The translations under genes and the position numbers were made by a program. The notes beneath the pieces were generated by a model. It did no database searches. It saw only the letters and a program-made list of their open reading frames with translations, and was not told the origin of the DNA. Below are positions 8,678 through 38,957 of a stretch of DNA of 64,000 bases, one piece after another. This stretch comes from Selaginella moellendorffii (Eukaryota > Plantae > Lycopodiophyta), in assembly GCF_000143415.4 (NCBI RefSeq), contig NW_003314305.1, positions 1,336,834 to 1,400,833 of the forward strand, read 5' to 3'. Position 1 is the stretch's first letter. Each line of letters opens with the position of its first letter.

Positions 8678-9438
8678 CTAGGCAAGCTGGAGTAGATCAT
8701 CCTCCTTGACGCACAGCTGGTGCCCCTGACGGTTGTAGAGCTTGCAACCTTCCCTGAGTGGCTTCTTGCAAGTGTGGCAAGAGTTGAAGTCGAGCGCAAC
8801 ACTTTTTGGACCTGGGCAGACATAGGAAGCAAACCCACATTCGAGCGTGCAGGCTTTACCAGGTCCTGAGACGCATACTGATTTGCCATGCCCCAAGTCC
8901 ATGCAACCTTGAGGAATGGTGCAACAAGTAGCGCAGCTGCCTGGCTTCCAAGGATGGACAGTGCCTCCACAAATCTCCACGGCATCCTTCAAGCAGGAGT
9001 TGTCATCACCATTTGGCAGTGGTGCACCAGTCTTTAAATTGTAGAGATGACAGCCATTCGAAGGCTCCTTACCCGGTGGGAGCACAGAAATTGGAATTCG
9101 GTTAGTCCATCGGGATGGGCAGACTTTGATTTTTGGTGGAAGACAAATTGGGAGGCAAGCACGAGCAGGGGAGGTGCCACCAAGACAAACTGGACTGCCA
9201 GTTCCAGGCTCGAGATATATGCATCCAGGCTCAAGCGTACAGCAATTGGAGCATTCGTCCAGAGTGACAACAGCATCACTACAAACCTGGAGACGATGGC
9301 CGCTGGCTGCAAAATCATCTTGACAAGGCATTCAAGAAGTCAGTCCTGAAAGAAAGAATCAAAACTTGGAGATCAACCTGCAGATATCAGAAGTAGCTGA
9401 AAGCTTAGGATAGTGAGGAACAAGAATGAAGCTGCCAT
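8678..9438 (-). CDS. Secreted multi-domain potato type II (Pin-II, I20)-like proteinase inhibitor, copy 1 (229 aa; exons 9438-9378, 9306-8678)
   Basis: Signal peptide MAASFLFLTILSFQLLLISA|ASG split by a 71-nt phase-1 intron; 24 Cys; motifs CxxCC-x5-C-x9/11-C...KACTLEC-x6-C match Pin-II repeats. Confidence 0.8.
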
Positions 9439-9770
9439 GTTGTTGTGGTGCTGAACCTCGGGCTGTTTGAATTTATAGTCACACAGTGGCATGCGATCGA
9501 TCTCTACAAAAATCTCACGTTTTTTCCGGACTTGAAAGTTGCGTATGGATTGTACTGATCGGGGGCCACCTAGCCTGGCTCTCTGTGGTGAAACAAATCA
9601 TATACTTCCAGAGAGGTGTCCCATCAGTAGTTTGATCGGTGAGGTCCGATGTGGGGCGACGTGGCCGGAAATACAAAGGATTGCATGCCACGTCATAATA
9701 GACGAGGTTAGCGAAGCGGCCATGGCGGGGCTGCTCGGCCATGGCGCTTCTTTCAACGTGGCCAGGCTGG
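9439..9770 (-). promoter_or_regulatory. Pin-II promoter: TATA box plus ACGT-core (T/G-box, G-box-like) and CGTCA motifs
   Basis: TATAAAT on - strand at 9471-9477; CACGTT at 9516-9521 (kept in all five copies); GACGTGGC ~9658; GCCACGTCA ~9687; AACGTGG ~9754. Confidence 0.5.
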
Positions 9771-10509
9771 GAGCACTAGGGTAGCAGCTCACAGCGCTGT
9801 CACAGCAATGTGCTATCCGATCGATCGATCTGGGTCTCGGGTTTAGTTTCTAGAGGTTTCCGGCTTCTCCACAGCTAGTGGTTTCGTCCTCCGGCCTATG
9901 GCACCGCTAGAAAATCCTCCAAACCTTGAAGAACAGATCGAGATTTAGGAGCAGCGAGAGATTGCACGAAAGATCTTGCGTTGGGAGCTCGACCGCAATT
10001 CTGCCTAGCTGCTCTATCGAAGATTTGCAAGTCGAGCGTTCAAACAGAGTGCTCAAGAGATTGAGCTCCGTCCATAAATTCAATCCTTTCTGGGCTCCGA
10101 CCAATGTGATGCCGCGATTCAAATTTCTGGCGCTTGGTGCCTCAACATGGGTAATACCATACGTATTGAAATATCACATATTGAATGATTTTGGAACAGC
10201 TTATGCACAACAAGGGAACTCTTTTGATTATATATACACATTTGTGGGCTCAGCTGGAGGCATTTACAATATACAAATTGATTTCCTTGTCCTGATTTTA
10301 ATCTTGGAGTCCCTCTCTTTTGCCAATGTGAAAATTACTTTTGCCTGTTGAACTTTACTAGACCAAAGACAAGAAATCCATTTGCATCCATTGCATTGTG
10401 GTTTAATGCATCTAGTTGTTGGGTGCTACATGTATACTTATTCTTTCAAAGCCTAGAAAAAAAAAAATCATTTGCTGCATGTGATTAATCCTTTATCTTT
10501 TTTCTAGAA

Positions 10510-10527
10510 TAAACCCTAAACCCTAAA
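10510..10527 (+). repeat. Short interstitial (TAAACCC)n telomere-like/telo-box tract (also ~19566-19587, 27922-27947, 30336-30353)
   Basis: TAAACCCTAAACCCTAAA seen directly at the same position of each duplicated spacer. Confidence 0.6.
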
Positions 10528-11079
10528 TAGACAGAACCATGTGAAAAAAGGGTGGCTTCAATTTTGATTTTAATGATGAGAATTGCATGCAGTAACAACT
10601 GGATCAATCAAGTGGATGAGATCAAAATCTTCAAATTCTATAATAAGCCAAAACATGAAACTCATGAGGTATTGTCTTTTAGTATTTATTTCCAAAGGCA
10701 ATTACTGAAAGGCAAAAAATTAATGCCCTTTTGGCCCTTTTTGAGCCATTTTACATGGGTGTTTTTTAAAAATGACCTTTAAATGTTGGGCAAAAGTGCA
10801 TATAGCTTTTTTTGTTCAAGGGCAATAAAATAAAATATTCTTTCATTTTCTCTTTCTTAATGGACAATGAATATTTTGAATTAAATGAACAAGGAGTTGA
10901 CAGTGTTTCTCTCAATGACATTTTCTCTCAATTAATTAAAATTTGGTTTGCATGTCATAATTGTCTTGTTTAGAGCATAGTTTTACAGAAGAAAATGGAA
11001 GGGCAACAACACTCATCATCTAGTTCTTATACTATACATTCAATCTTTTTTATTTCCATGCATTTAATTTATAGATCTT

Positions 11080-12259
11080 AGGAAAAAAGTACATTCTTTC
11101 TTCCCTTTCTAGGTCCCCATTGCCACAGCTCGCCGTGATTGTCCATATCTGCGGTAGAATCCAGTGCGGGATTGATTGCTCAGGCTCTTTAGCCCGGGAT
11201 TTCTTGGACTGGATGGCTTCACCTCTCTTGCAATACCATTGATGCATGAGTGCGTGGAAGCAAATGTTCCAGCGGTGCTGTCTGCATGATCGTCGTATTG
11301 GAGGGCTTCGTTCTCATCCACAGCTGAGAATCTGGGGAGGGAGGGCAGATCGAGCTCCCACAGCTCCAGCAAATTGGTAAGATATCTTCTAACTTATCAA
11401 TCGACTTGCAAAACTCATGAAGCTCCTCTTGCAGGAAGGAACAAGCCGAGCTTCCACTATCTCGCCGCCGAATCCACAGCCCTCCAATACGTTCTTCTTT
11501 TAAACTGGGAACTGACAAGTTTCTATCCAGTTCTTAGTTCCAGACGCTAGACTTCGATGCAATGAAAGAGAGAAGAGAGAATCTGGACAGTCTTAAGCCC
11601 AAGATCGTTGACATGGTTGTCAAGAAGATGAAGCATAACACATATCTCTCGCTCGATTTCTTTACGCTGGCCATGAGAATCTCCAGCTTCCGGCACGACG
11701 TGGTGATGGTCATGATCCTTGGAGTCGATGGCAACTATCTTGGTGATCAGAGACATGCCCCGTGGAAACGATCTCTATGTGAAGACGAGGAAGCTGTGGC
11801 CGCCACATCGTCCGAGACAGCAGAAAGACCCCCAAGTAGGCTTGGATAGATTCAGCATGGTAGCAGTCCAACACCAGCTCGGGAGGAAGACTTAAACAGC
11901 CTACAAGAAGGAAAGCAACTCCGTGGATCTGATCATGAGTCACAAGCAGTACAGGCAGGAGCTCCACCTTCACAGCAGGAAGGAGTGGAACGTCCATGCA
12001 GTCAGGGACAAGTTTCTGGTCTACGAGACACTTCCTCACGTGAGCGACACCAGTGATGATCCTTTGGTGCTTTGCAGTCATGACAAGATCGTCATTGTTC
12101 GGCCCTTGTCAGTAACAGTGGACAACCGGGCAAAGAATGTCTCGTGGAACTCATTGGGCTTGCGGGAATGCAAAGAAGAAACGGAGAACTATACGGTGCC
12201 GAGCAGTAAGGAGAGTCAGTCGGGTTTAGTTCCAGGCAAAGGATGAAGGAAGGAGGAGG
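11080..12259 (+). pseudogene. Broken copy of the 48.4-49.6 kb region (upstream segment plus 5' part of the PPR-derived chimeric ORF)
   Basis: KHNTYLSLDFFTLAMRISSFRHDVV... and DLIMSHKQYRQELHLH... match ORF 48948; frameshift ~11740, stop ~11893; truncated by junction into SHPRH at 12260. Confidence 0.8.
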
Positions 12260-14796
12260 GATTTGCATGGCTTGCTTAGATTCTTACAAGCAGAGCCGTT
12301 TGACAATCATACTTGGTGGCAGCAAAGCTATAAAACATCCTTGCGAGGTACTATGTGTTTTTTCCTTTTTATTGTAAGTAACACTCGTTGCTCTCCAGGA
12401 AGGAAAAATGGGAGCAGTTGACTTTGCTCATTCCTTTTTCCGTGAGATTATGTGGCGGTCTATGAAGATCGATGTCATAGACCAGCTAGATATTCCTCCT
12501 CAAGAAGAGCGAATTACATGGCTCAAGTTTTCGGGTGTTGAGAACCACTTTTATAGGCAACAACACGAGCAATGCGTGAAGAGAGCCAGAGAAGCTATTG
12601 AGAAGTACTCATTAGGTGCTGGTCGACCTCTAAATCATATGAATACCTCAAAGTTAATGAACCCCTTGTTGAAGCTGCGACAAGCTTGTTGCCATCCTCA
12701 AGTGGGGAGTTCGGGAGTACGCTCGTTGCAGGCATCACCACGCTCATTGCAGGCCGATGGATGAAGTCTTGGAGGTAAGGAACCTTGGTATTAGAGTCTT
12801 CAGGTCCTAATTGAAAAAGCTAAAACTGAAGGAGAAGAAGCTCAACGAGATCTTGTTGATTCGTTGAACGGACTGGCAGGTCTGGCGATTATCGAGGAAA
12901 ACATCCCCATGGCTGTCTCCATTGACCGAGAAGCACTAGCAGCCGCGGAGGAAAATGCGACTAATTTTGAAGTTGATCCGCTTCAGAAAGTCCATATTTT
13001 ACACAATTTGGAAGAGTCACTCAGAAACTGCAAGGATGACGCATTGAGCAAAATTCCAAGAACTCTGAGGGATGATATGCTGATCAGTCAATGCGACGAA
13101 TTACGAAGGAAGTACGTCAGTGGCCAGTATGCAAATCTTGCTGCGGCTCAGCACGCTGCACACAAAGAAGTATTATTGATTTCTTTTCAAAAAAGCCCTT
13201 CTTTATCCTGCAGATCAGTCTGATGATAAATCTTCAAGATGGAGCCACTGGTGGCTAGATGCTTTTGCATGGGTTCAAACATCGAGCAAACGAAGTGACC
13301 ACCTATTGGAACGAATAAAGCACGGGCTGGAAGATGTAAATCGTGCTGGTGGTCGGAATGACAATAGCACAACAATTAGTTCTAACTGAATTGGACGAGC
13401 TGAGCATGTCGACAACAAGGCTATGTTTGCAAGGTGCCAAGGCTGCAGACGGCAATCCTTTTGGTGATGAAGGCTACGAGATAGCAATTAGAAACGCGGA
13501 GCTTACCAACGAAAAATTTGTTGCTGTTGAGAATCTATCTCGTGTGAAGAGGCAGCTCAGATACTTGAAGGTATTAGGCTTAAGTTTTCTTCTATTCGCA
13601 GCTCCTCTCATTTCCGGATTGCAGGGTCTAAGGAATAAGAAGGACGAGGGGCATAACAGTTTGGAAGGAGAAATTTGCCCAGTTTGCCACGATGGCATAG
13701 AATCTGGAGCGATGGTCCTTCCATGCGGCCATTTGCTTTGTGGCAAGTGTAAGTTTTTGGTGTCTTACTTTGTTGGTTTCCTGAGCAAATCTTCATTTTA
13801 TTTCGCAGGTTTGAATCTTATTGTGGACCGCCAGAAAGCACCAGCTAACGGTGCTGATTTCAAGCGCATTGCATGTCCAACGTGCAGCAGACTTATGTCT
13901 CTAATATTGCTTATGCCAATGCTGAAGCGGCTTCTTCGAAAATTGCGGAAATCCTCCAGGAAGAAGAAGAGGACGAAGAAAAATCTATAACCGTGGCAGG
14001 GTCGTACGGAACAAAGGTAATCTCGCTTTGTCGTCTGCTTTTTATTTTAATTCTATTGCAACTTTGAAGATTGAAGCTGTCGTCAGGAGAATTCTTAGTC
14101 TGAAAGAAGACGATCCGTTTGTGAAAATTCTTGTGTTCTCGACGTGGAAAGAAGTGCTGGACTTGTTAGAACACGCACTGAAGAGCAACAAGCTCAGCTG
14201 GGTTCGACTAAAGCCTCTCAGGTAATATCGATAATCTGTTTTACTTTTACTCATGTGCTCGTTTTGTGTTTTTCAGACAAATGGGTTCTTCCATCTTGGA
14301 ATTTAAGGAGAACATCCAAGTCATGTTACTACCCATACAACATGGTGCCAATGGCCTGAACTTAATAGAGAACACGTTATTTTGGTGGAGCCTTTGCTCA
14401 CCCCGGCAGTAGAAGCTCAGGCTATCAATCTAGTCCACCGGATTGGCCAACGTCTTAAGACACTTGTACATAGATTCATTGTAAGTTACGTACGTTTCTT
14501 CTGTTTTCCAATTACTGACGACATTTCCAGATACGTAACACTGTGGAGGAGAACATCTACAAAATGAACCAGCAGAAGACGAACCTCCTTCCAATGAAAC
14601 AAAAAGAGCAGCCTCTATCAGCGAATGACATGAACAGTTTACAATGAATCGCTTGGGACGAACCGAAAGAGAACACAGCTACTTCAAATACAGTGGTTCT
14701 ACTCCTGATACTTTCCGAGATTTAACTCCGGCTCAAGCTGCTGCTGCTGCTGCTGAATCGCGGCTCTTGCGACTACAGGCCAACGCTTGTCTATAG
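12260..14796 (+). pseudogene. SHPRH: 5'-truncated SHPRH pseudogene, copy 2
   Basis: Starts mid-exon (equivalent to ~2391), lacks ATPase motifs I-III and PHD; ~790-bp internal deletion at ~13360; frameshifts. Confidence 0.9.
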
Positions 14797-14937
14797 ATTC
14801 TTTGTAAGTACTTTCTGTTGCATGTCCGGATTCTGAACCTTCGTATTTTCTGGCAGAGAAGGAACATTCTTTAGTCAAACGATGAGCTTTCGGTAAGTTT
14901 TTCTGTTGGCGAGGGGTTTAGCTAGCTAGCAACAGAG

Positions 14938-17289
14938 ATGGGTGCCAAGTTTCAGCCCCTTCCTCGCTTCTACTGGACGAAGGCTGCGATCAGAGACCTG
15001 TGCCGGGACGACGATCTCTACGTGAAGACGTAGTATGGTAGGAAGTTGAGGCCGCCGCCTCGTCCGCGACTAAGTCGAGAGCAGGAACGCTTTGTTCACA
15101 CAGACCCTCAAGCAGGCTTGGATAGAATCAGTGGGCAGTGGGTAGCACTCCAACACCAGCTCGGGAAGAAGCAGGAAGGCACCTACATGGGTCCGATTCT
15201 GGGTCACAAGCAATACAGGTGCGAGCTCCATCTTCACAGGGGACAGAAGCAATGGAATGTCCATGCAGTCGGGGACAAGTTTCTGGTCTACGAGACACTT
15301 CCTCCTGCGACCGACACCGGTGATGATCCTCCGGTGCTTTGTGGTCGCGACAAGTTCGTCATTGGTCGGCCTCTGTCACTAGACAACCGGGCGACGAATG
15401 TTTCCTCGTCGTGGAACTCGTTTCCAGTGTGGAGCTTGCCAAAAGAAGGCAAGGAGGGAACGATCGCTCTGCCGGGGAACTATATGGTGCCGAGCAGTAA
15501 GGTGGCGCTGCCGGGTTTAGTTCCAGGCAGGGGAGCGCTAGTCTTCGATGCCTTGTACGAGACTGTGAAGGAAGGAGGAGTGAGCTGGAGCTCCGAGATG
15601 GTTGAGAAGCTGGACAGGCTCAAGCATGGGATAATGCACCCCCACCAGGTCTGCGTGGTTCTCAAGAAGATCAAGCACGACGCATCTCTCTCGCTCAAGC
15701 TCTTTACGTGGGCCAAGACGATCCCAGGCTTCAAGCACGACTTGGTAAACTACTCGACGATGATCATGATCTTGGGAGATGACGGGAACTATCTCATGGC
15801 CGAGGCACTTTTTGTTGAGATCCAGGAGCTCGGGCTTCGCCTTGACACGTTTGCAGTGAACAACATGATCCGCTGCTACACAAGAGTGAACCGGATCCAG
15901 GAAGCTCTCGACCTCTACAGTAAGATGCCATACTTTGGCTGTCACCCGGACAATTGCACCTTCGGCCTCCTCATCGACTGGTGCGGCAAGTTCGGCTCCC
16001 GGAAGGAGCTCCAACGGATCTTCCTCGACTTGAGAGCCTCCCCCCGCAATGCCGACGCGCAGACGTTCAACACAATGATCCACAACTTCTGCAAGCAGCG
16101 GGACTTCGCAAACGCCAGGGAAGCCGCCAACCAGATGAAAGCCTGGGGGATTCCATTCTCCTCTGCAACGTACGCCATCCTCATCCACATGTACGCCAAG
16201 GCTCGAGACTCGAAAGCAGCGGCAGAGCTCTACGCGGACTACCTCCGCTCCGGCCTAGAGCCAAACTTGATCGTCTACAACAACGTGATACTGAGTTACG
16301 GTTCCAGCGGCTTCCCTGGCCATGCGCAGAACATCCTGGGTGATATACGAAAGGCCGGCCTCGCTCCAGATCGATTCACGTACTGCACGCTCATAAGTTC
16401 GTGGGCGAGAGCCGGAGCTATGCTGCAAGCCCGGCGATGGTTCAACAAAGCCTGCAAGACGAAGGCCGGTCCAAGCATCGAGATGTGCAACGCGCTCATC
16501 GATGGCTACCTCAAGGCCCGAGAAGTGGAACCGGCTAAGTTCATCCTCACCAAAGTCATGCCGGAGAGAGGCGTGGAGCCGACGCTGCAAACGTACACGA
16601 TCCTCCTGGGCCACTACACGAGCAGCGTCAAGGTGGCGGACTCGAGAGCAGTGAGAGAGATGATGAAGTCGTCCTCGAAACCACCACCACTACCAGCAGC
16701 AGCAGCAGCAGCAGCAGGAGGAGGAGGAGGAGGAGATGATCATCCTGGCGTGGACGAGTTCCTGAACGAGATCCTGCAAGGCCTCCGCGCGATCAAGGAG
16801 CTCAAGAGCTACTCGAGGGAGTTTTTCCGCAAGCTGAGGATGGACAAGCCTCCTCGCTGGGGGCGATGGCTGGCGGACGCTCTCGTCAACCATCTCCACT
16901 GCTTTGGCTACGCTCGCGAGGCCTTCTACGTGTGGGAGGGGGTCTCCTCCACAGAGCTCTACCCGAGAGGGATCTGGGAGGACTGGCAGGGAGCGTGGTT
17001 TATCTGGCTCCAGGATATGAGCTCCGGGACTGCGATGGTGGCGCTCACCAGTGTGTCCAGGCGGAAGCTCGCGCGGGGATTCGAGAGGCCGGAGCGAGTG
17101 ATCATCGTGTGTGGCTACGCGTCGGACAAGAGCAAGGAGGTGACCCATGCGGTGAACAGGACGCTGGTGGCTCTAGACTCGCCGTTTGAGCCTTTCATCT
17201 CTATGGGGAGATTTATGTGCGAGGGGAACTTGTTTAGAGACTGGCTGTGGGAGAAGCAAGTTGCTATAGAGCTCACCATGGATGCTTAG
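14938..17289 (+). pseudogene. PPR-SMR copy 2: TAG at 15031, but long downstream ORF intact (possible restart at ATG 15187)
   Basis: Near-identical to 5900-8272; AAG>TAG at 15031-15033; only in-frame indels afterwards. Confidence 0.75.
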
Positions 17290-17700
17290 AATTAATATGT
17301 AATTAGCGCATTAATGGGAGGGTAAAAAGGACAAAGATTCGTTGGATCTATCCTTTTGCTTTGCTTTTTCTTAAGCTAGGAATTTTCTTAGGCTGCAAAT
17401 TAGCACTTATGGATGTGATATGGCAAGAGCGAGCCTTATGTTGTTTCAACTCAGGAAGCTGATGAGCTGAACACCAATGCATTGTGATGTATGATTGAGA
17501 TCTATAACATAGACTATTGGGAAAGTAAACATTATGGTTTGTTTGGAACTTCTTTGAAAGTGCAAGACTACAAAGAGATTGCAGACAACAAGTTGCGTTG
17601 TCAAACTTTATATATATAATATATATATATACATTTCAAGTACCCGTTATTTAAACAACGATGCCCAGAGCTGTTTATTTTATAAATACTGCATCATCTT

Positions 17701-18461
17701 CTAGGCAAGCTGGAGTAGATCATCCTCCTTGACGCACAGCTGGTGCCCCCGACGGTTGTAGAGCTTGCAACCTTCCCTGAGTGGCTTCTTGCAAGTGTGG
17801 CAAGAGTTGAAGTCGAGCGCAACACTTTTTGGACCTGGGCAGACATAGGAAGCAAACCCACATTCGAGCGTGCAGGCTTTACCAGGTCCTGAGACGCATA
17901 CTGATTTGCCATGCCCCAAGTCCATGCAACCTTGAGGAATGGTGCAACAAGTAGCGCAGCTGCCTGGCTTCCAAGGATGGACAGTGCCTCCACAAATCTC
18001 CACGGCATCCTTCAAGCAGGAGTTGTCATCACCATTTGGCAGTGGTGCACCAGTCTTTAAATTGTAGAGATGACAGCCATTCGAAGGCTCCTTATCCGGT
18101 GGGAGCACAGAAATTGGAATTCGGTTAGTTCCTCGGGATGGGCAGACTTTGATTTTTGGTGGATGACAAATTAAGGGGCAAGGACGAAAAGGGGAGGTGC
18201 CACCAAGACAAACTGGACTGCCAGTTCCAGGCTCGAGATATATGCATCCAGCCTCAAGCGCACAGCAACTGGAGCATCCGTCGAGAGTGACAACAGCATC
18301 ACTACAAACCTGGAGACGATGGCTGCTGGCTGCAAAATCATCTTGACAAGGCATTCAAGAAGTCAGTCCTGAAAGAAAGAATCAAAACTTGGAGATCAAC
18401 CTGCAGATATCAGAAGTAGCTGAAAGCTTAGGATAGTGAGGAACAAGAATGAAGCTGCCAT
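17701..18461 (-). CDS. Pin-II-like inhibitor, copy 2 (reactive loops CPLIC / CTLEC)
   Basis: Same two-exon structure, intact ORF, all 24 Cys retained. Confidence 0.8.
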
Positions 18462-21043: not shown

Positions 21044-23215
21044 CTTTTATAGGCAACAACACGAGCAATGCGTGAAGGGGGCCAGAGAAGCTATTGAGAA
21101 GTACTCATTAGGTGCTGGTCGACCTCAAGTTCTTACTAAGCCAGGAGTTGGATGCTCTCCATGAGACTCGTGACCACGTACTGAGTCGCTTACTTGAAAT
21201 GGATGGCGGGATGCAGAATCCGAATCCCGATTATGTGCAGCGCGCTGGACAATGTTCCCAGTGCCAGCCTAGACACACTGGGATAACCTGTGCTCATTGT
21301 GCTATTGATCTCATGTTTCAGGTACAATCTACTTCTTTCTTGTGTGGATAAACAGAAATATGCAAATAGGCGATTTTACTTGACGTCCCGAGCAGCTGAA
21401 TTAGATGGCATTGTTACTGCAGAAGACGCCTTTGTTTCTCAAGTACGTTCACAGGCAGGAGAAAAGGAGCAGCAGTAGCTGCGGTAAGGCAACTTCTTTT
21501 TGTTTTTCTAACTTTTTTCTTTTGTTTTTCTTTCCTTCGAGCTTAAATATTTCTTTTCACAGGTTACGCACAGATGTTCTGAAACGGAAATGGTTTTAAA
21601 AATTTTACTTGCATACATGAAAGCGGAAACGAACCTTGAGGAGGATGAGATAGAAGCCGCAAAGAAGCACCTCGAGTACCTTGAAGTAAACACTCCTGTG
21701 CTTATTTGTAAGTCTGTTTGACAAACCGTGTCAATTCAGGCATTGCGTAGCGAATATGCAGCGGCGAGACGCTTGACAACAGCACAACAATTAGTTCTAA
21801 CTGCATTGGACGAGCTGAGCATGTCGACAACAAGGCTATGTTTGCTTGCAAGGTGCCAAGGCTGCAGACGGCAATCCTTTTGGTGATGAAGGCTACGAGA
21901 TAGCAATTAGAAACGCGGCGCTTACCAACGAAAAATTTGTTGCTGTTGAGAATCTATCTCGTGTGAAGAGGCAGCTCAGATACTTGAAGGTATTAGGCTT
22001 AAGTTTTCTTCTATTCGCAGCTCCTCTCATTTCCGGATTGCAGGGTCTAAGGAATAAGAAGGACGAGGGGCATAACAGTTTGGAAGGAGAAATTTGCCCA
22101 GTTTGCCACGATGGCATAGAATCTGGAGCAATGGTCCTTCCGTGCGGCCATTTGCTTTGTGGCAAGTGTAAGTTTTTGGTGTCTTACTTTGTTGGTTTCC
22201 TGAGCAAATCTTCATTTTACTTCGCAGGTTTGAATCTTATTGTGGACCGCCAGAAAGCACCAGCTAACGGTGCTGATTTCAAGCGCATTGCATGTCCAAC
22301 GTGCAGACAACAGACTTATGTCTCTAATATATGCTGAAGCGGCTTCTTCGAAAATTGCTGAAATCCTCCAGGAAGAAGAAGAGGACGAAGAAAAATCTAT
22401 AACCGTGGCAGGGTCGTACGGAACAAAGGTAATCTCGCTTTGTCGTCTGCTTTTTATTTTAATTCTTTTGCAAGTTTGAAGATTGAAGCTGTCGTCAGAA
22501 GAATTCTTAGTCTGAAAGAAGACGATCCGTTTGTGACAATTCTTGTGTTCTCGACGTGGCAAGAAGTGCTGGACTTGTTAGAACACGCACTGAAGAGCAA
22601 CAAGCTCAGCTGGGTTCGATTAAAGCAGCGCAGGTAACATCGATAATCTGTTTTACTTTTACTCATGTGCTCGTTTTGTGTTTTTCACAGACAAATGGGT
22701 TCTTCCATCTTGGAATTTAAGAAGGAGAACATCCAAGTCATGTTACTGCCCACACAACATGGTGCCAATGGCCTGAACTTAATAGAGGCCCAACACGTTA
22801 TTTTGGTGGAGCCTTTGCTCAATCCGGCAGTAGAAGCTCAGGCTATCAATCGAGTCCACCGGATTGGCCAACGTCTAAAGACACTTGTACATAGATTCAT
22901 TGTAAGTTACGTACGTTTCTTCTGTTTTCCAATTACTGACGACATTTCCAGATACGTAACACTGTGGAGGAGAACATCTACAAAATGAGCCAGCAGAAGA
23001 CGAACCTCCTTCCAATGAAACAAAAAGAGCAGCCTCTTTCAGCAAATGACATGAACAGCTTACTAGCTTGGGACGAACTGAAAGAGAACACATCTACTTC
23101 AAACACCCCCAGTGGTTCTACTCCTGATACTTTCCGAGATTTAACTCCGGCTCAAGCTGCTGCTGCTGCTGCTGAATCGCGGCTCTTGTGACTACAGGCC
23201 AACGCTTGCCTATAG
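21044..23215 (+). pseudogene. SHPRH: 5'-truncated SHPRH pseudogene, copy 3
   Basis: Enters at the equivalent of ~2679, jumps ~2760 to ~3625 at a CCTC microhomology; frameshifts; CGA>TGA near the end. Confidence 0.9.
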
Positions 23216-23356
23216 ATTCCTTGTAAGTACTTTCTCTTGCATGTCCGGATTCTGAACCTTTGTATTTTCTAGCAGAGAAGGAACATTCTTTAATCGAAAG
23301 ATGAGCTTTCGGTAAGTTTTTCTTTTGGCGAGGGGTTTAGCTAGCTAGCAACAGAG

Positions 23357-25555
23357 ATGGGTGCCAAGTTTCAGCCCCTTCCTCGCTTCTACTGGACGAA
23401 GGAACAGATTGCTGCGATCAGAGACCTGTGCCGTGACGACGATCTCTACGTGAAGACGAAGTATGGTAGGAAACTGAGGCCGCCGCCTCGTCCGCGACTA
23501 AGTCGAGAGCAGGAACGCTTTGTTCGCGCAGACCCTCAAGCAGGCTTGGATAGAATCAGTGGGCAGTGGGTAGCACTCCAACACCAGCTCGGGAAGAAGC
23601 CTTACACAGCCGAGGAGCAGGAAGGCAACTACGTGGGTCCGATTCTGGGTCACAAGCAATACAGGTGCGAGCTCCATCTTCACAGGGGACAGAAGCAGTG
23701 GAATGTCCATGCAGTCGGGGACAAGTTTCTGGTCTACGAGACACTTCCTCCCGCGACCGACACCGGTGATGATCCTCCGGTGCTTTGTGGTCGCGACAAG
23801 TTCGTCATTGGTCGCCCTCTGTCAGTAACAATGGACAACCGGGCGACAAATGTTTCCTCGTCATGGAACTCGTTTCCAGTGTGGAGCTTGCCAGAAGAAG
23901 GCAAAGAGGGAACGATCGGGAACTATATGGTGCCGAGCAGTAAGGTGGCGCTGCCGGGTTTAGTTCCAGGCAAAGGAGCGCTAGTCTTCGATGCCTTGTA
24001 CGAGACTGTGAAGGAAGGAGGAGCGAGCTGGAGCTCCGAGATGGTTGAGAAGCTGGACAGGCTCAAGCGTGGGATAACGCACCCCCACCAGGTCTGCGTG
24101 GTTCTCAAGAAGATCAAGCACGACGCATCTCTCTCGCTCAAGCTCTTTACGTGGGCCAATACGATCCCAGGCTTCAAGCACGACTTGGTAAACTACTCGA
24201 CGATGATCATGATCTTGGGAGATGACGGGAACTATCTCATGGCCGAGGCGCTTTTTGTTGAGATACAGGAGCTCGGGCTTCGCCTTGACACGTTTGCAGT
24301 GAACAACATGATCCGCTGCTACACAAGAGTGAACCGGATCCAGGAAGCTCTCGACCTCTACAGGAAGATGCCATACTTTGGCTGTCACCCGGACAATTGC
24401 ACCTTCGGCCTCCTCATCGACTGGTGCGGCAAGTTCGGCTCCCGGAAGGAGCTCCAACGGATCTTCCTCGACTTGAGAGCCTCCCCCCACAATGCCGACG
24501 CGCAGACGTTCAACACAATGATCCACAACTTCTGCAAGCAGCGGGACTTCGCAAACGCCAGGGAAGCTGCCAACCAGATGAAAGCCTGGGGGATTCCATT
24601 CTCCTCTGCAACGTACGCCATCCTCATCCACATGTACGCCAAGGCTCGAGACTCGAAAGCAGCGGCAGAGCTCTACGCGGACTACCTCCGCTCCGGCCTA
24701 GAGCCAAACTTGATCGTCTACAACAACGTGATACTGAGTTACGGTTCCAGCGGCTTCCCTGGCCATGCGCAGAACATCCTGGGTGATATACGAAAGGCCG
24801 GCCTCGCTCCAGATCGATTCACGTACTGCACGCTCATAAGTTCGTGGGCGAGAGCCGGAGCTATGCTGCAAGCCCGGCGATGGTTCAACAAAGCCTGCAA
24901 GACGAAGGCCGGTCCAAGCATCGAGATGTGCAACGCGCTCATCGATGGCTACCTCAAGGCCCGAGAAGTGGAACCGGCTAAGTTCATCCTCACCAAAGTC
25001 ATGCCGGAGAGAGGCATGGAGCCGACGCTGCAAACGTACACGATCCTCCTGGGCCACTACACGAGCAGCGTCAAGGTGGCGGACTCGAGAGCAGTGAGAG
25101 AGATGATGAAGTCGTCCTCGAAACCAGCAGCAGCAGCAGCAGGAGGAGGAGGAGGAGGAGGAGATGATCATCCCGGCGTGGACGAGTTCCTGAACGAGAT
25201 CCTGCAAGGCCTCCGCGCGATCAAGGAGCTCAAGAGCTACTCGAGGGAGTTTTTCCGCAAGCTGAGGATGGACAAGCCTCCTCGCTGGGGGCGATGGCTG
25301 GCGGATGCTCTCGTCAACCATCTCCACTGCTTTGGCTACGCTCGCGAGGCCTTCTACGTGTGGGAGGGTGTCTCCTCCACAGAGCTCTACCCGAGAGGGA
25401 TCTGGGAGGACTGGCAGGGAGCGTGGTTTATCTGGCTCCAGGATATGAGCTCCGGGACTGCGATGGTGGCGCTCACCAGTGGATTGATCGTGTCCAGGCG
25501 GAAGCTCGCGCGGGGATTCGATAGGCCGGAGCGAGTGATCATCGTGTGTGGCTAA
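23357..25555 (+). CDS. PPR-SMR copy 3, C-terminally truncated (732 aa) within the SMR domain
   Basis: 11-nt deletion (CGCGTCGGACA) after VIIVCG creates TAA at 25553-25555; PPR tract intact. Confidence 0.75.
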   Translation: MGAKFQPLPRFYWTKEQIAAIRDLCRDDDLYVKTKYGRKLRPPPRPRLSREQERFVRADPQAGLDRISGQWVALQHQLGKKPYTAEEQEGNYVGPILGHKQYRCELHLHRGQKQWNVHAVGDKFLVYETLPPATDTGDDPPVLCGRDKFVIGRPLSVTMDNRATNVSSSWNSFPVWSLPEEGKEGTIGNYMVPSSKVALPGLVPGKGALVFDALYETVKEGGASWSSEMVEKLDRLKRGITHPHQVCVVLKKIKHDASLSLKLFTWANTIPGFKHDLVNYSTMIMILGDDGNYLMAEALFVEIQELGLRLDTFAVNNMIRCYTRVNRIQEALDLYRKMPYFGCHPDNCTFGLLIDWCGKFGSRKELQRIFLDLRASPHNADAQTFNTMIHNFCKQRDFANAREAANQMKAWGIPFSSATYAILIHMYAKARDSKAAAELYADYLRSGLEPNLIVYNNVILSYGSSGFPGHAQNILGDIRKAGLAPDRFTYCTLISSWARAGAMLQARRWFNKACKTKAGPSIEMCNALIDGYLKAREVEPAKFILTKVMPERGMEPTLQTYTILLGHYTSSVKVADSRAVREMMKSSSKPAAAAAGGGGGGGDDHPGVDEFLNEILQGLRAIKELKSYSREFFRKLRMDKPPRWGRWLADALVNHLHCFGYAREAFYVWEGVSSTELYPRGIWEDWQGAWFIWLQDMSSGTAMVALTSGLIVSRRKLARGFDRPERVIIVCG

Positions 25556-26124: not shown

Positions 26125-26885
26125 CTAGGCAAGCTGGAGTAGATCATCCTCCTTGACGCACAGCTGGTGCCCCTGACGGTTGTAGAGCTTGCAACCTTCC
26201 TTGAGTGGCTTCCTGCAAGTGTGGCAAGAGTTGAAGTCGAGCGCAACACTTTTTGGACCTGGGCAGACATAGGAAGCAGAGCCACATTTGAACGTGCAAG
26301 TTTTATCAGGTCCTGAGACGCATATCGATTTGCCATGCCCCAAGTCCAAGCAACCTTGAGGAATGCTGCAACAAGTAGCGCAGCTGCCTGGCGTCCAAGG
26401 ATGGACAGTGCCTCCACAAATCTCCACGGCATCCTTCAAGCAGGAGTTGTCATCACCATTTGGCAGTGGTGCACCAGTCTTTAAATTGTAGAGATGACAG
26501 CCATTCGAAGGCTCCTTACCCGGTGGGAGCACAGAAATTGGAATTTGGTTAGTCCATCGGGATGGGCAGACTTTGATTTTTGGTGGAAGACAAATTGGGT
26601 GGCAAGGACGAAAAGGGGCGGTGCCACCAAGACAAACTGGACTGCCAGTTCCAGGCTCGAGATATATGCATCCAGCCTCAAGCGTACAGCAATTGGAGCA
26701 TGCGTCCAGAGTGACAACAGCATCACTACAAACCTGGAGACGATGGCCGCTGGCTGCAAAATCATCTTGACAAGGCATTCAAGAAGTCAGTCCTGAAAGA
26801 AAGAATCAAAACTTGGAGATCAACCTGCAGATATCAGAAGTAGCTGAAAGCTTAGGATAGTGAGGAACAAGAATGAAGCTGCCAT
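26125..26885 (-). CDS. Pin-II-like inhibitor, copy 3 (reactive loops CHPIC / CTFKC)
   Basis: Intact two-exon gene, 24 Cys retained. Confidence 0.8.
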
Positions 26886-28518: not shown

Positions 28519-29279
28519 CTAGGCAAGCTGGAGTAGATCATCCTCCTTGACGCACAGCTGGTGCCCCCGACGGTTGTAGAGCTTGCAACCTTCCCTGAGT
28601 GGCTTCTTGCAAGTGTGGCAAGAGTTGAAGTCGAGCGCAACACTTTTTGGACCTGGGCAGACATAGGAAGCAAACCCACATTCGAGCGTGCAGGCTTTAC
28701 CAGGTCCTGAGACGCATACTGATTTGCCATGCCCCAAGTCCATGCAACCTTGAGGAATGGTGCAACAAGTAGCGCAGCTGCCTGGCTTCCAAGGATGGAC
28801 AGTGCCTCCACAAATCTCCACGGCATCCTTCAAGCAGGAGTTGTCATCACCATTTGGCAGTGGTGCACCAGTCTTTAAATTGTAGAGATGACAGCCATTC
28901 GAAGGCTCCTTATCCGGTGGGAGCACAGAAATTGGAATTCGGTTAGTTCCTCGGGATGGGCAGACTTTGATTTTTGGTGGATGACAAATTAAGGGGCAAG
29001 GACGAAAAGGGGAGGTGCCACCAAGACAAACTGGACTGCCAGTTCCAGGCTCGAGATATATGCATCCAGCCTCAAGCGCACAGCAACTGGAGCATCCGTC
29101 GAGAGTGACAACAGCATCACTACAAACCTGGAGACGATGGCTGCTGGCTGCAAAATCATCTTGACAAGGCATTCAAGAAGTCAGTCCTGAAAGAAAGAAT
29201 CAAAACTTGGAGATCAACCTGCAGATATCAGAAGTAGCTGAAAGCTTAGGATAGTGAGGAACAAGAATGAAGCTGCCAT
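28519..29279 (-). CDS. Pin-II-like inhibitor, copy 4 (protein identical to copy 2)
   Basis: Intact; translated ORF identical to 17701-18354. Confidence 0.8.
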
Positions 29280-32083: not shown

Positions 32084-35000
32084 GATTTGCATGGCTTGCT
32101 TAGATTCTTACAAGCAGAGCCGTTTGACAATCATACTTGGTGGCAGCAAAGCTATAAAACATCCTTGCGAGGTACTATGTGTTTTTTCCTTTTTATTGTA
32201 AGTAACACTCGTTGCTCTCCAGGAAGGAAAAATGGGAGCAGTTGACTTTGCTCATTCCTTTTTCCGTGAGATTATGTGGCGGTCTATGAAGATCGATGTC
32301 ATAGACCAGCTAGATATTCCTCCTCAAGAAGAGCGAATTACATGGCTCAAGTTTTCGGGTGTTGAGAACCACTTTTATAGGCAACAACACGAGCAATGCG
32401 TGAAGAGAGCCAGAGAAGCTATTGAGAAGTACTCATTAGGTGCTGGTCGACCTCTAAATCATATGAATACCTCAAAGTTAATGAACCCCTTGTTGAAGCT
32501 GCGACAAGCTTGTTGCCATCCTCAAGTGGGGAGTTCGGGAGTACGCTCGTTGCAGGCATCACCACGCTCATTGCAGGCCGATGGATGAAGTCTTGGAGGT
32601 AAGGAACCTTGGTATTAGAGTCTTCAGGTCCTAATTGAAAAAGCTAAAACTGAAGGAGAAGAAGCTCAACGAGATCTTGTTGATTCGTTGAACGGACTGG
32701 AAGGTCTGGCGATTATCGAGGAAAACATCCCCATGGCTGTCTCCATTGACCGAGAAGCACTAGCAGCCGCGGAGGAAAATGCGACTAATTTTGAAGTTGA
32801 TCCGCTTCAGAAAGTCCATATTTTACACAATTTGGAAGAGTCACTCAGAAACTGCAAGGATGACGCATTGAGCAAAATTCCAAGAACTCTGAGGGATGAT
32901 ATGCTGATCAGTCAATGCGACGAATTACGAAGGAAGTACGTCAGTGGCCAGTATGCAAATCTTGCTGCGGCTCAGCACGCTGCACACAAAGAAGTATTAT
33001 TGATTTCTTTTCAAAAAAGCCCTTCTTTATCCTGCAGATCAGTCTGATGATAAATCTTCAAGATGGAGCCACTGGTGGCTAGATGCTTTTGCATGGGTTC
33101 AAACATCGAGCAAACGAAGTGACCACCTATTGGAACGAATAAAGCACGGGCTGGAAGATGTAAATCGTGCTGGTGGTCGGAATGTTTCTAGTCTTTATCT
33201 TTCTTGGAAGGTACTCTACTGAGCATGTAGATACCACGACCTTAACGGCCTCAAGTTCTTACTAAGCCAGGAGTTGGATACTCTCCATGAGACTCGTGAC
33301 CACGTTCTGAGCCGCTTAGTTGAAGTGGATGGCGGGATGCAGAATCCGAATCCCGATTATGTGCAGCGCGCTGGACAATGTTCCCAGTGCCAGCCTAGAC
33401 ACACTGGGATAATTGTGCTCATTGTGCGATTGATCTCATGTTTCAGGTACAATCTGCTTCTGTGGTTTCTGACATTGTCAGTGTGGATAAACAGAAATAT
33501 GCAAATAGGCTATTTTACTTGACGTCCCGAGCAGCTGAATTAGATGGCATTGTTACTGCAGAAGACGCCTTTGTTTCTCAAGTATGTTCACTGGATAAGG
33601 GAAACAAGGAAACTGAGACGAACACAGGCAGGAGAAAAGGAGCAGCAGTAGCTGCGGTAAGGCAACTTCTTTTTGTTTTTTAAACTTTTTTCTTTTGTTT
33701 TTCTTTGCTTCGAGCTTAAATATTTCTTTTCACAAGTTACGCACAGATGTTCTGAAACGGAAATGGTTTTAAAAATTTTACTTGCATACATGAAAGCGGA
33801 AACGAACCACCTTGAAGTAAACACTCCTGTGCTTATTTGTAAGTCTTTGACAAACCATGTCAATTCAGGCATTGCGTAGCGAATATGCAGCGGCGAGACG
33901 CTTGACAATAGCACAACAATTAGTTCTAACTGAATTGGACGAGCTGAGCATGTCGACAACAAGGCTATGTTTGCAAGGTGCCAAGGCTGCAGACGGCAAT
34001 CCTTTTGGTGATGAAGGCTACGAGATAGCAATTAGAAACGCGGAGCTTACCAACGAAAAATTTGTTGCTGTTGAGAATCTATCTCGTGTGAAGAGGCAGC
34101 TCAGATACTTGAAGGTATTAGGCTTAAGTTTTCTTCTATTCGCAGCTCCTCTCATTTCCGGATTGCAGGGTCTAAGGAATAAGAAGGACGAGGGGCATAA
34201 CAGTTTGGAAGGAGAAATTTGCCCAGTTTGCCACGATGGCATAGAATCTGGAGCAATGGTCCTTCCATGCGGCCATTTGCTTTGTGGCAAGTGTAAGTTT
34301 TTGGTGTCTTACTTTGTTGGTTTCCTGAGCAAATCTTCATTTTATTTCGCAGGTTTGAATCTTATTGTGGACCGCCAGAAAGCACCAGCTAACGGTGCTG
34401 ATTTCAAGCGCATTGCATGTCCAACGTAGCAGACTTATGTCTCTAATATTGCTTGTGCCAATGCTGAAGCGGCTTCTTCGAAAATTGCGGAAATCCTCCA
34501 GGAAGAAGAAGAGGACGAAGAAAAATCTATAACCGTGGCAGGGTCGTACGGAACATAGGTAATCTGGCTTTGTCGTCTTTTTAATTTAATTCTTTTGCAA
34601 CTTTGAAGATTGAAGCTGTCGTCAGGAGAATTCTTAGTCCCGATCCGTTTGTGAAAATTCTTGTGTTCTCGACGTGGAAAGAAGTGCTGGACTTGTTAAA
34701 ACACGCACTGAAGAGCAACAAGCTCAGCTGGGTTCGACTAAAGCCTCTCAGGTAATATCGATAATCTGTTTTACTCTTACTCATGTGCTCGTTTTGTGTT
34801 TTTCACAGACAAATGGGTTCTTCCATCTTGGAATTTAAGGAGAACATCCAAGTCATGTTACTGCCCACACAACATGGTGCCAATGGCCTGAACTTAATAG
34901 AGAACACGTTATTTTGGTGGAGCCTTTGCTCACTCCGGCAGTAGAAGCTCAGGCTATCAATCTAGTCCACCGGATTGGCCAACGTCTTAAGTCACTTGTA

Positions 35001-35322
35001 CATAGATTCATTGTAAGTTACGTACGTTTCTTCTGTTTTCCAATTACTGACGACATTTCCAGATATGTAACACTGTGGAGGAGAACATCTACAAAATGAA
35101 CCAGCAGAAGACGAACCTCCTTCCAATGAAGCAAAAAGAGCAGCCTCTATCAGCGAATGACATGAACAGTTTACTAGCTTGGGACGAACCGAAAGAGAAC
35201 ACAGCTACTTCAAACACAGTGGTTCTACTCCTGATACTTTCCGAGATTTAACTCCGGCTCAAGCTGCTGCTGCTGCTGCTGAATCGCGGCTCTTGCGACT
35301 ACAGGCCAACGCTTGTCTATAG
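32084..35322 (+). pseudogene. SHPRH: 5'-truncated SHPRH pseudogene, unit 5
   Basis: Same 5' junction as 12260 (offset 19824); stops and deletions (TAG at 34427, 34556). Confidence 0.9.
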
Positions 35323-35463
35323 ATTCTTTGTAAGTACTTTCTGTTGCATGTCCGGATTCTGAACCTTCGTATTTTCTGGCAGAGAAGGAACATTCTTTAG
35401 TCAAAAGATGAGCTTTCGGTAAGTTTTTCTGTTGGCGAGGGGTTTAGCTAGCTAGCAACAGAG

Positions 35464-37763
35464 ATGGGTGCCAAGTTTCAGCCCCTTCCTCGCTTCTACT
35501 GGACGAAGGCTGCGATCAGAGACCTGTGCCGGGACGACGATCTCTACGTGAAGACGTAGTATGGTAGGAAGTTGAGGCCGCCGCCTCGTCCGCGACTAAG
35601 TCGAGAGCAGGAACGCTTTGTTCACACAGACCCTCAAGCAGGCTTGGATAGAATCAGTGGGCAGTGGGTAGCACTCCAACACCAGCTCGGGAAGAAGCAG
35701 GAAGGCACCTACATGGGTCCGATTCTGGGTCACAAGCAATACAGGTGCGAGCTCCATCTTCACAGGGGACAGAAGCAATGGAATGTCCATGCAGTCGGGG
35801 ACAAGTTTCTGGTCTACGAGACACTTCCTCCTGCGACCGACACCGGTGATGATCCTCCGGTGCTTTGTGGTCGCGACAAGTTCGTCATTGGTCGGCCTCT
35901 GTCACTAGACAACCGGGCGACGAATGTTTCCTCGTCGTGGAACTCGTTTCCAGTGTGGAGCTTGCCAAAAGAAGGCAAGGAGGGAACGATCGCTCTGCCG
36001 GGGAACTATATGGTGCCGAGCAGTAAGGTGGCGCTGCCGGGTTTAGTTCCAGGCAGAGGAGCGCTAGTCTTCGATGCCTTGTACGAGACTGTGAAGGAAG
36101 GAGGAGTGAGCTGGAGCTCCGAGATGGTTGAGAAGCTGGACAGGCTCAAGCATGGGATAATGCACCCCCACCAGGTCTGCGTGGTTCTCAAGAAGATCAA
36201 GCACGACGCATCTCTCTCGCTCAAGCTCTTTACGTGGGCCAAGACGATCCCAGGCTTCAAGCACGACTTGGTAAACTACTCGACGATGATCATGATCTTG
36301 GGAGATGACGGGAACTATCTCATGGCCGAGGCACTTTTTGTTGAGATCCAGGAGCTCGGGCTTCGCCTTGACACGTTTGCAGTGAACAACATGATCCGCT
36401 GCTACACAAGAGTGAACCGGATCCAGGAAGCTCTCGACCTCTACAGTAAGATGCCATACTTTGGCTGTCACCCGGACAATTGCACCTTCGGCCTCCTCAT
36501 CGACTGGTGCGGCAAGTTCGGCTCCCGGAAGGAGCTCCAACGGATCTTCCTCGACTTGAGAGCCTCCCCCCGCAATGCCGACGCGCAGACGTTCAACACA
36601 ATGATCCACAACTTCTGCAAGCAGCGGGACTTCACAAACGCCAGGGAAGCCGCCAACCAGATGAAAGCCTGGGTACGCCATCCTCATCCACATGTACGCC
36701 AAGGCTCGAGACTCGAAAGCAGCGGCAGAGCTCTACGCGGACTACCTCCGCTCCGGCCTAGAGCCAAACTTGATCGTCTACAACAACGTGATACTGAGTT
36801 ACGGTTCCAGCGGCTTCTCTGGCCATGCGCAGAACATCCTGGGTGATATACGAAAGGCCGGCCTCGCTCCAGATCGATTCACGTACTGCACGCTCATAAG
36901 TTCGTGGGCGAGAGCCGGAGCTATGCTGCAAGCCCGGCGATGGTTCAACAAAGCCTGCAAGACGAAGGCCGGTCCAAGCATCGAGATGTGCAACGCGCTC
37001 ATCGATGGCTACCTCAAGGCCCGAGAAGTGGAACCGGCCAAGTTCATCCTCACCAAAGTCATGCCGGAGAGAGGCGTGGAGCCGACGCTGCAAACGTACA
37101 CGATCCTCCTGGGTCACTACACGAGCAGCGTCAAGGTGGCGGACTCGAGAGCGGTGAGAGAGATGATGAAGTCGTCCTCGAAACCAGCAGCAACAGCAGC
37201 AGCAGGAGGAGGAGGAGGAGATGATCATCCCAGCGTGGACGAGTTCCTGAACGAGATCTTGCAAGGCCTCCGCGCGATCAAGGAGCTCAAGAGCTACTCG
37301 AGGGAGTTTTTCCGCAAGCTGAGGATGGACAAGCCTCCTCGCTGGGGGCGATGGCTGGCGGATGCTCTCGTCAACCATCTCCACTGCTTTGGCTACGCTC
37401 GCGAGGCCTTCTACGTGTGGGAGGGGGTCTCCTCCACAGAGCTCTACCCGAGAGGGATCTGGGAGGACTGGCAGGGAGCGTGGTTTATCTGGCTTGAGCT
37501 CCGGGACTGCGATGGTGGCGCTCACCAGTGGATTGATCGTGTCCAGGCGGAAGCTCGCGCGGGGATTCGAGAGGCCGGAGCGAGTGATCATCGTGTGTGG
37601 CTACGCGTCGGACAAGAGCAAGGAGGTGACCCATGCGGTGAACAGGACGCTGGTGGCTCTAGACTCGCCGTTTGAGCCTTTTATCTCTATGGGGAGATTT
37701 ATGTGCGAGGGGAACTTGTTTAGAGACTGGCTGTGGGAGAAGCAAGTTGCTATGGATGCTTAG
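35464..37763 (+). pseudogene. PPR-SMR pseudogene, unit 5
   Basis: TAG at 35557 shared with copy 2; 23-nt deletion ~36672 and 10-nt deletion ~37495 shift the frame. Confidence 0.88.
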
Positions 37764-38193
37764 AATTAATATGTAATTAGCACATTAATGGAAGGGTAAA
37801 AAGGACAAAGATTCGTTGGATCTAACGTTTTGATTTTGTTTATTTTTTCTTTAAGTTCAGGTATTTAGGAATTTTCTTAAATTAGCACATGGATGTGATA
37901 AGGCAAGAGCGAGCCATATGTTGTTTCAACTCAGAGGAAGCTGATGAGCTGAACACCAATGCATTGTGATGTATGATTTGGTTCTGCGGAGATCTATAAC
38001 ATAGACTATTGGGAAAGTAAACATTATGCCTAGGTAAAGTTTGTTTGGAACTTCTTTGTAAGTGCAAGATTACAAAGACAACAAGTTGCGTTGTCAAACT
38101 TTATATATATAATATATATATACATTTCAAGTACCCATTATTTAAACAACGATGCCCAGAGCTGTTTATTTTATATAAATACAGCATCATCTT

Positions 38194-38957
38194 CTAGGCA
38201 AGCTGGAGTAGATCATCCTCCTTGACGCACAGCTGGTGCCCCTGACGGTTGTAGAGCTTGCAACCTTCCTTGAGTGGCTTCTTGCAAGTGTGGCAAGAGT
38301 TGAAGTCGAGCGCAACACTTTTTGGACCTGGGCAGACATAGGAAACAAAACCACATTCGCGCGTGCAGACTTTACCAGGTCCTGAGACGCATATTGATTT
38401 GCCATGCCCCAAGTCCAAGCAACCTTGAGGAATGGTGCAACAAGTAGCGCAGCTGCCTGGCGTCCAAGGATGGACAGTGCCTCCACAAATCTCCACGGCA
38501 TCCTTCAAGCAGGACTTGTCATCACCATTTACTGGCAGTGGTGCACCAGTCTTTAAATTGTAGAGATGACAGCCATTCGAAGGCTCCTTATCCGGTGGGA
38601 GCACAGAAATTGGAATTCGGTTAGTCCCTCGGGATGGGCAGACTTTGATTTTTGGTGGTTCACAAATTAAGGGGCAAAGACGAGAAGCAGAGGTGCCACC
38701 AAGACAAACTGGACTGCCAGTTCCAGGCTCTAGATATATGCATCCAGCCTTAAGCGCACAGCAATTGGAGCATTCGTCCAGAGTGACAACAGCATCACTA
38801 CAAACCTGGAGACGATGGCTGCCGGCTGCAAAATCATCATGACAAGGCATTCAAGAAGTCAGTCCTGAAAGAAAGAATCAAAACTTGGAGATCAACCTGC
38901 AGATATCAGAAGTAGCTGAAAGCTTAGGATAGTGAGGAACAAAAATGAAGCTGCCAT
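38194..38957 (-). CDS. Pin-II-like inhibitor, copy 5 (reactive loops CPLIC / CTREC)
   Basis: Intact, one-codon insertion (LPVNG), 24 Cys retained. Confidence 0.8.

Follow-up and report, generated by a model that had tools for sequence, protein, structure and literature searches.

Reactive-loop divergence on a conserved cysteine scaffold in a tandem array of Pin-II protease inhibitor genes from Selaginella moellendorffii

An open reading frame (ORF) scan of a 64,000-nucleotide stretch of Selaginella moellendorffii DNA (contig NW_003314305.1; hereafter the window) revealed five intact genes of the potato-type-II inhibitor (Pin-II) family, arranged in tandem and all on the minus strand. The scan gave five ORFs of 217 or 218 amino acids, and the PF02428 (Prot_inhib_II) profile matches all five copies with scores of 41.0-52.9 bits against a cut-off of 22.3. 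This agrees with the first-pass annotation of the window, which had assigned the proteins to Pin-II with the reactive-loop motif C-P2-P1-P1'-C, and the loop register described below agrees with it as well. The genes share one layout, in which an exon 1 of 61 nucleotides is followed by a phase 1 GT-AG intron of 71 nucleotides and an exon 2 of 629 nucleotides (632 in copy 5). The full products comprise 229 amino acids, or 230 in copy 5 owing to an extra Val codon. A TATAAAT box lies ~35 nucleotides before the ATG and is retained in 5/5 window copies. Exon 1 (20 codons) encodes a hydrophobic N-terminus of ~20 residues, and the products are predicted to be secreted. Searches and structure predictions used exon 2, and the joined coding sequence served for codon counting only. 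The genes and their two reactive loops are located as follows.

8678-9438, minus strand: copy 1 gene from ATG to stop (exon 1 9378-9438, intron 9307-9377, exon 2 8678-9306; 229 amino acids)
9143-9166, minus strand: copy 1 loop 1, ARACLPIC (P2-P1-P1' = L-P-I), register set by Pfam profile positions 3-7 together with the alignment of the internal repeat
8837-8857, minus strand: copy 1 loop 2, KACTLEC (P1 Leu), from the Pfam match and sliced coordinates
17701-18461, minus strand: copy 2 gene (exon 1 18401-18461, intron 18330-18400, exon 2 17701-18329)
18166-18189, minus strand: copy 2 loop 1, FRPCPLIC (P1 Leu), Pfam register
17860-17880, minus strand: copy 2 loop 2, KACTLEC (P1 Leu)
26125-26885, minus strand: copy 3 gene (exon 1 26825-26885, intron 26754-26824, exon 2 26125-26753)
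26590-26613, minus strand: copy 3 loop 1, FRPCHPIC (P1 Pro)
26284-26304, minus strand: copy 3 loop 2, KTCTFKC (P1 Phe)
28519-29279, minus strand: copy 4 gene, coding sequence equal to that of copy 2 (exon 1 29219-29279, intron 29148-29218, exon 2 28519-29147)
28984-29007, minus strand: copy 4 loop 1, FRPCPLIC
28678-28698, minus strand: copy 4 loop 2, KACTLEC
38194-38957, minus strand: copy 5 gene (exon 1 38897-38957, intron 38826-38896, exon 2 38194-38825; 230 amino acids)
38662-38685, minus strand: copy 5 loop 1, SRLCPLIC (P1 Leu), Pfam register
38353-38373, minus strand: copy 5 loop 2, KVCTREC (P1 Arg)

All loop strings reported in the first-pass annotation were recovered exactly at these coordinates. 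Its description of five near-identical paralogs holds for the near-identity but not for the number of variants, because the coding sequences of copies 2 and 4 are identical and the five genes therefore encode four distinct proteins. The other distinct copies exhibit 90-94% protein identity to copy 1, and pairwise synonymous divergence (dS) among the window paralogs is 0.015-0.044. The leader, the intron and the cysteines had also been described as essentially invariant, and we found one synonymous change in exon 1, one change in the intron (both in copy 5) and 24/24 invariant Cys residues in the mature protein. We interpret these genes as young tandem paralogs of a putative two-headed potato-type-II serine-protease inhibitor. 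They are already annotated, as LOC9647732, LOC9647735, LOC112350004 and others at NCBI.

The annotated isoforms bear on these gene models. The introns (e.g. 9307-9377) carry two in-frame AG acceptors 12 nucleotides apart, and NCBI isoforms with and without the residues DDFA correspond to them. The sole substitution in the copy 5 intron (38826-38896) changes the upstream AG to TG, a state common to two of the genes on scaffold GL377567.1 described below; NCBI nevertheless annotates a copy 5 isoform that uses the mutated upstream acceptor. The model LOC112350004 (26125-29528, minus strand) connects copy 4's exon 1, together with an upstream ORF, to exon 2 of either copy 4 or copy 3, the latter lying 2.4 kb downstream. 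These mixed isoforms probably arose from reads that could not be placed uniquely because the first exons are identical, or from read-through.

An internal repeat comparison established how the loops are positioned in the protein. Each protein is an internal duplication: its N- and C-terminal halves share 33% identity (E=3e-7), loop 1 falls opposite loop 2, and each half contains a contiguous eight-cysteine unit of the form C-x2-CC-x5-C-x9/11-C-x7/9-C-x3-C-x6/7-C. When the units are aligned with the cysteine-rich segment first and the loop last, 8/8 Cys, several Gly and one Pro are kept in both, which suggests that the partner of each loop is the cysteine-rich segment preceding it. Overall, the protein consists of two ~100-residue units, each made up of a complete cysteine unit and a degenerate half-repeat, with 24 Cys in total. 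In loop 2, position 1 of the Pfam profile falls on the residue two places ahead of the first Cys, which puts the Cys pair at positions 3 and 7. The middle residue of the C-x-x-x-C segment at profile positions 3-7 is therefore P1. By this register, loop 2 has Leu, Phe or Arg at P1, and loop 1 has Leu or Pro. The unusual P1 Pro that had been noted for copies 1 and 3 is indeed present, in the tripeptides LPI and HPI. Taken alone, loop 1 segments yield a weak Pfam match in copies 2 and 5 (14-15 bits, from profile position 2) and none in copies 1 and 3. The P1-Pro head may therefore be inactive, as had been proposed.

Changes among the copies are concentrated at the two loops. With the loops defined as the 8- and 7-residue windows of the first-pass annotation, 7/15 residues vary in the loops compared with 24/192 in the rest of exon 2 (odds ratio (OR) 6.1, p=0.0024). 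Tree-free minimum counts of non-synonymous changes give 12 per 35 non-synonymous (N) sites in the loops and 27 per 440 elsewhere (OR 8.0, p=3.7e-6). Relative to the pooled synonymous rate, replacement in the loops stands at a ratio of 5.5 (p=4e-5), whereas the corresponding ratio for the rest of exon 2 is 0.99. Variable nucleotides per 30-nucleotide window peak exactly at the two loops, with values of 7, 6 and 9 versus 0-4 elsewhere. The earlier claim of loop variability was framed such that it would fail if substitutions were not enriched at the loops relative to the rest of exon 2, and enrichment is what we observe for residues and for replacements alike. None of the 24 Cys codons is variable, while 31/207 positions vary (p=0.016), and the open frames are kept in all eight known copies of the gene.

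The copies are mosaics produced by gene conversion or unequal crossing-over. Trees of the N-terminal and C-terminal halves conflict with 99-100% bootstrap support. Copies 2 and 4 exhibit 0/629 differences in exon 2, while their flanks are 12-13% diverged; their introns are identical too, and divergence starts beyond ~150 bp of flank. This identity suggests a recent gene-conversion tract about 1 kb in length. Copies 1 and 3 differ at 2/500 positions in the 5' flank and at 22/629 in exon 2. Across the array, exon 1 and the intron contain 2/132 variable sites compared with 102/472 in the flanks (p=5e-10).

Three further inhibitor genes are located on scaffold GL377567.1, two of them adjacent and the third (L002:10001-10764) ~168 kb off. 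The GL377567.1 units are 98.9% and 97.5% identical to the units of copy 5 and copy 1, respectively, whereas the window units are 91-95% identical to one another. The scaffold region (L001:354-19469 / L003) lacks the stretch bearing copies 2-4 (window positions 13100-33500). This region is therefore the other haplotype, and the sequenced plant is polymorphic for copy number, with a 5-copy and a 2-copy allele. The GL377567.1 allele of copy 1 combines the N half of copy 1 with the C half of copy 3. The possibility that the paralogs are themselves alleles of two haplotypes mis-joined in tandem is highly improbable and was rejected, for although the assembly of S. moellendorffii is generally described as including both haplotypes, the allelic region is found on a separate scaffold with higher identity to the window units than these have to one another, and copies 2-4 have distinct flanks.

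Site models were fitted with our own codon-likelihood code rather than with PAML. Recombination among the copies is pervasive, a feature overlooked in the first-pass annotation, and it violates the single-tree assumption of the PAML test proposed there; the single-tree analysis was dropped on account of the conflict between half-trees; partitioned trees and three-sequence sets were used in its place. With separate trees for each half, model M2a is favoured over M1a (twice the log-likelihood difference (2dlnL)=26.35, p=2e-6), with a ratio of non-synonymous to synonymous rates (dN/dS, or omega) of 13 for 13% of sites. The posteriors for membership in this fast class are 0.945 for P1 of loop 1 (codon 73) and 0.970 for P1 of loop 2 (codon 176). 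Posteriors of at least 0.945 occur at eleven sites, seven of which lie in or beside the loops (68, 70, 72, 73, 76, 173 and 176). The other four are codons 38, 90, 142 and 206, and the last three of these are homoplasic and probably represent recombination artefacts. Sets of three sequences have one possible topology, and recombination therefore cannot mis-specify their tree. The four such sets also favour M2a over M1a (p=0.015, 0.006, 0.00016 and 0.004), and in the set of copies 1, 3 and 5 the only sites with posteriors above 0.9 are the seven loop sites.

The co-duplicated PPR genes, which lie ~400 bp away from the inhibitor genes, provide an internal control. Their dS of 0.018-0.045 is the same as that of the inhibitors, and their omega is 0.15-0.39 versus 0.94-2.0. 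By this comparison the inhibitor has clearly been released from ordinary constraint.

We consider it somewhat probable that selection preserves the differences between the reactive loops, with conversion and unequal crossing-over meanwhile making the remainder of the gene uniform and shuffling it. Under this model, exchange between repeat units of ~9 kb would account for the near-identity of the promoter-proximal region, signal peptide, intron and scaffold, and the same exchange would reshuffle the two protein halves. The two loops, whose divergence is about 6-8 times that of the remainder of exon 2, would persist as islands, presumably held apart by selection for differing protease specificities (diversifying selection in the broad sense), and tightly linked silent sites would be carried along with the selected loops. 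The outcome would be a panel of inhibitory heads in which loop 2 P1 residues direct the protein to putative targets that are chymotrypsin- or subtilisin-like (Leu), chymotrypsin-like (Phe) or trypsin-like (Arg), and in which loop 1 offers P1 Leu or Pro. Selection is favoured because relaxed constraint alone cannot raise replacements to 5.5 times the silent rate, because the islands coincide with the functional loops while frames, Cys and promoters are intact, and because the loop 2 P1 residues are classical specificity determinants.

A number of results weigh against this interpretation. The sample is small: the window supplies four distinct sequences, and all eight genes together supply seven. 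None of the pairwise Nei-Gojobori (NG86) dN/dS values (0.94-2.0) is individually significant, and a single omega for the whole gene is 1.83 (p=0.069 versus 1). Synonymous changes also cluster within two codons of the loops, with 5 per 16.7 synonymous (S) sites compared with 4 per 129 (p=0.001), and the local dN/dS ratio near the loops, by counts, is 1.2-1.7. When loop neighbourhoods are given their own rate, their omega is 1.79 (p=0.28 versus 1), compared with 2.06 elsewhere in exon 2 (p=0.12). Measured against exon-2 branch lengths from model M0, the loop neighbourhoods evolve at ~4-fold and the rest at 0.6-fold rates. Only the overall rate differs locally, and the omega 13 class of M2a is therefore largely rate heterogeneity, which this model does not distinguish from selection. 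The site-model analysis that had been suggested thus gives a significant result whose signal is mostly local rate variation. The data show high total divergence at the loops, not a local excess of replacements over silent changes. Furthermore, several loop codons differ by two nucleotides, and what look like repeated hits there could stem from multi-nucleotide mutation or from imported conversion tracts. Loop 1, with Ile at P1' and with Pro at P1 in two copies, may be non-inhibitory altogether. AlphaFold models were too poor for mapping the variable sites, with mean confidence (predicted local distance difference test, pLDDT) of 33.3 for whole exon 2 and 51.4 for one cysteine unit. The diversifying selection originally proposed for this array is supported in part, by the loop enrichment, the conservation of Cys and the presence of both P1 codons in the fast class of M2a, but not by a local dN/dS above 1.

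The form in which that proposal was first made, recurrent positive (arms-race) substitution at the loops after duplication, would call for dN greater than dS at the loops and would need no old haplotypes. We regard it as unlikely, although several observations are in its favour. M2a is preferred on the partitioned trees and in all four three-sequence sets, and five loop positions (68, 70, 72, 173 and 176), as well as position 76 immediately past loop 1, carry 3-4 amino-acid states each among 4-7 distinct sequences. Copies 1 and 3 differ at 2/632 nucleotides across the 5' flank, exon 1 and intron, yet at 8 nucleotides, all of them non-synonymous, within codons 38-90. However, several of these copy 1/copy 3 differences are states shared with copy 2, which a short conversion tract explains equally well, and with the local synonymous rate taken into account, omega at the loops does not significantly exceed 1.

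An equally doubtful explanation assigns no adaptive value to the variation. Here the loops would be exposed, unconstrained segments that by chance lie in older or more mutable stretches still to be overwritten by conversion, and the panel would be a product of drift in which some heads are dead, notably the P1-Pro loop 1. An omega of about 1.8-2.1 throughout exon 2 that does not differ significantly from 1, the raised synonymous sites beside the loops, the lack of a Pfam match for the loop 1 segments of copies 1 and 3 and its weakness in copies 2 and 5, and the decayed Pin-II relics in the same window are all consistent with this explanation. However, a replacement rate 5.5 times the pooled synonymous rate is beyond relaxed constraint, and pure relaxed constraint was rejected on this ground as a sufficient cause. 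Both divergence peaks fall on the two loops, for which we put the chance at ~1% for two random islands (a rough estimate, not a computed value). Moreover, Cys, frames and TATA boxes are intact in the inhibitors, whereas two of the four PPR genes duplicated along with them carry a truncation or a frameshift, a third starts at an internal TTG, and only fragments of the SNF2/RING gene are carried in the repeat units.

A bolder version of the favoured model, in which selection maintains loop differences against homogenising exchange, is less likely still. It holds that the loops are long-lived, selectively balanced 'cassettes' that resist erasure by concerted evolution and are recombined by micro-conversion and unequal crossing-over, with the P1-Pro head directed at some unusual protease, for instance a proline-directed or an endogenous one. 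Six two-headed loop combinations are present among the eight genes. If the cassette proposal is true, this would be the first combinatorial diversification of inhibitors outside seed plants.

These genes have been catalogued previously. Santamaria et al. 2014 (PMC4189545) lists 4 Pin-II members in S. moellendorffii with two domains each, in which one or three canonical cysteines are missing and six are extra. The PINIR resource (PMC8188708) includes S. moellendorffii, and Pro is absent from the available text that deals with P1 residues. The genes in these two catalogues are the same as those of the window array. Unlike in the 2014 catalogue, both units keep eight Cys here when read with the loop last, and the 'missing' cysteines may thus be an effect of the frame in which the repeat is read. 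The loop strings had no match in the PINIR supplement, and the available text of PMC4189545 and PMC8188708 makes no mention of loop variation, inter-copy recombination or 5- versus 2-copy haplotypes. A search of the accessible literature found no paper on loop variation in Selaginella. With exon 2 of copy 1 as the query, one 90%-identity cluster was recovered that contains 13 S. moellendorffii proteins, all named 'uncharacterized' or 'hypothetical'. A word-based homologue search gave no candidates for the C-terminal half and only the S. moellendorffii cluster for whole exon 2.

The closest parallel is offered by the Pot II inhibitors of Solanaceae (Pin-II, MEROPS I20), such as tomato inhibitor II and NaProPI of Nicotiana alata, which belong to the same Pfam family and have the same eight-cysteine unit and C-P2-P1-P1'-C loop. 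Loop 2, K-x-C-T-[L/F/R]-[E/K]-C, is one that we take to be very like the solanaceous loops. As in Selaginella, tandem arrays with a hypervariable P1 on a conserved Cys scaffold are known there, and Kong & Ranganathan 2008 (PMC2259423) found P1 of Solanaceae Pot II to be under positive selection and the cysteines under purifying selection. The Selaginella proteins differ in having two ~100-residue units, each with a degenerate half-repeat, 24 Cys, and a loop 1 with Ile at P1' and, in two copies, Pro at P1, and in belonging to the lycophyte lineage. They are also too diverged for phmmer to reach solved Pin-II chains: whole exon 2, the C-terminal 91 residues and the 49-residue Pfam-matched stretch, each compared with the solved structures, returned no Pin-II chain and only chance matches.

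Hypervariable reactive centres also occur in serpins and in ovomucoid Kazal domains. Inhibitors of the Kunitz/BPTI venom and tick type provide an example of fast contact-loop change on a conserved scaffold in young tandem duplicates (PMC5107962). The fast contact loop and fixed scaffold are common to all these families, whose folds are unrelated to Pin-II. In Selaginella, unlike in these families, the synonymous sites beside the loops are raised as well. These raised silent sites point to preserved old haplotypes under concerted evolution, and not merely to faster replacement.

Relatives of tomato and potato already provide examples of variable loops on a fixed Cys scaffold in tandem Pin-II genes. 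The present array extends this textbook pattern of plant-defence evolution from Solanaceae to a lycophyte, a member of a lineage that arose about 400 million years ago according to the abstract of PMC1184070. This suggests that the mode of evolution goes with the fold, not with one plant family. The array is also a cautionary case, in that a strong site-model signal of 'positive selection' largely dissolves once recombination and local variation in synonymous rate are taken into account. Finally, the natural panel of P1 residues, with Leu, Phe or Arg in one head and Leu or Pro in the other, is a ready set for specificity assays on a divergent Pin-II scaffold.

Other features in and around the repeat units are located as follows.

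5900-8272, plus strand: PPR gene, co-duplicated, one per inhibitor unit
15046-17289, plus strand: PPR gene, as above
23357-25555, plus strand: PPR gene, as above
35572-37675, plus strand: PPR gene, as above
12408-13990, plus strand: SNF2/RING (SHPRH-like) helicase fragment, carried in a repeat unit
21846-22988, plus strand: SNF2/RING helicase fragment, as above
32232-34429, plus strand: SNF2/RING helicase fragment, as above
60807-61061, minus strand: decayed Pin-II relic
42731-43027, minus strand: decayed Pin-II relic

Among the PPR genes, copy 2 starts at an internal TTG, copy 3 is truncated at its C-terminus, and a frameshift splits the one beside inhibitor copy 5. A full-length SNF2/RING gene (2074 amino acids in the NCBI model) adjoins the last inhibitor copy on the other haplotype (L001:11191-19013). 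The two Pin-II relics are fragments with 41-56% identity, and one of them has lost a Cys of the CC pair along with the loop segment. Their neighbours are a cytochrome-P450-like gene at 59128-60673 and, at 42046-42312, a fragment of that gene. Just beyond the end of the array, the segment at 40001-42000 has a G+C content of 26.5%, compared with 41-57% elsewhere.

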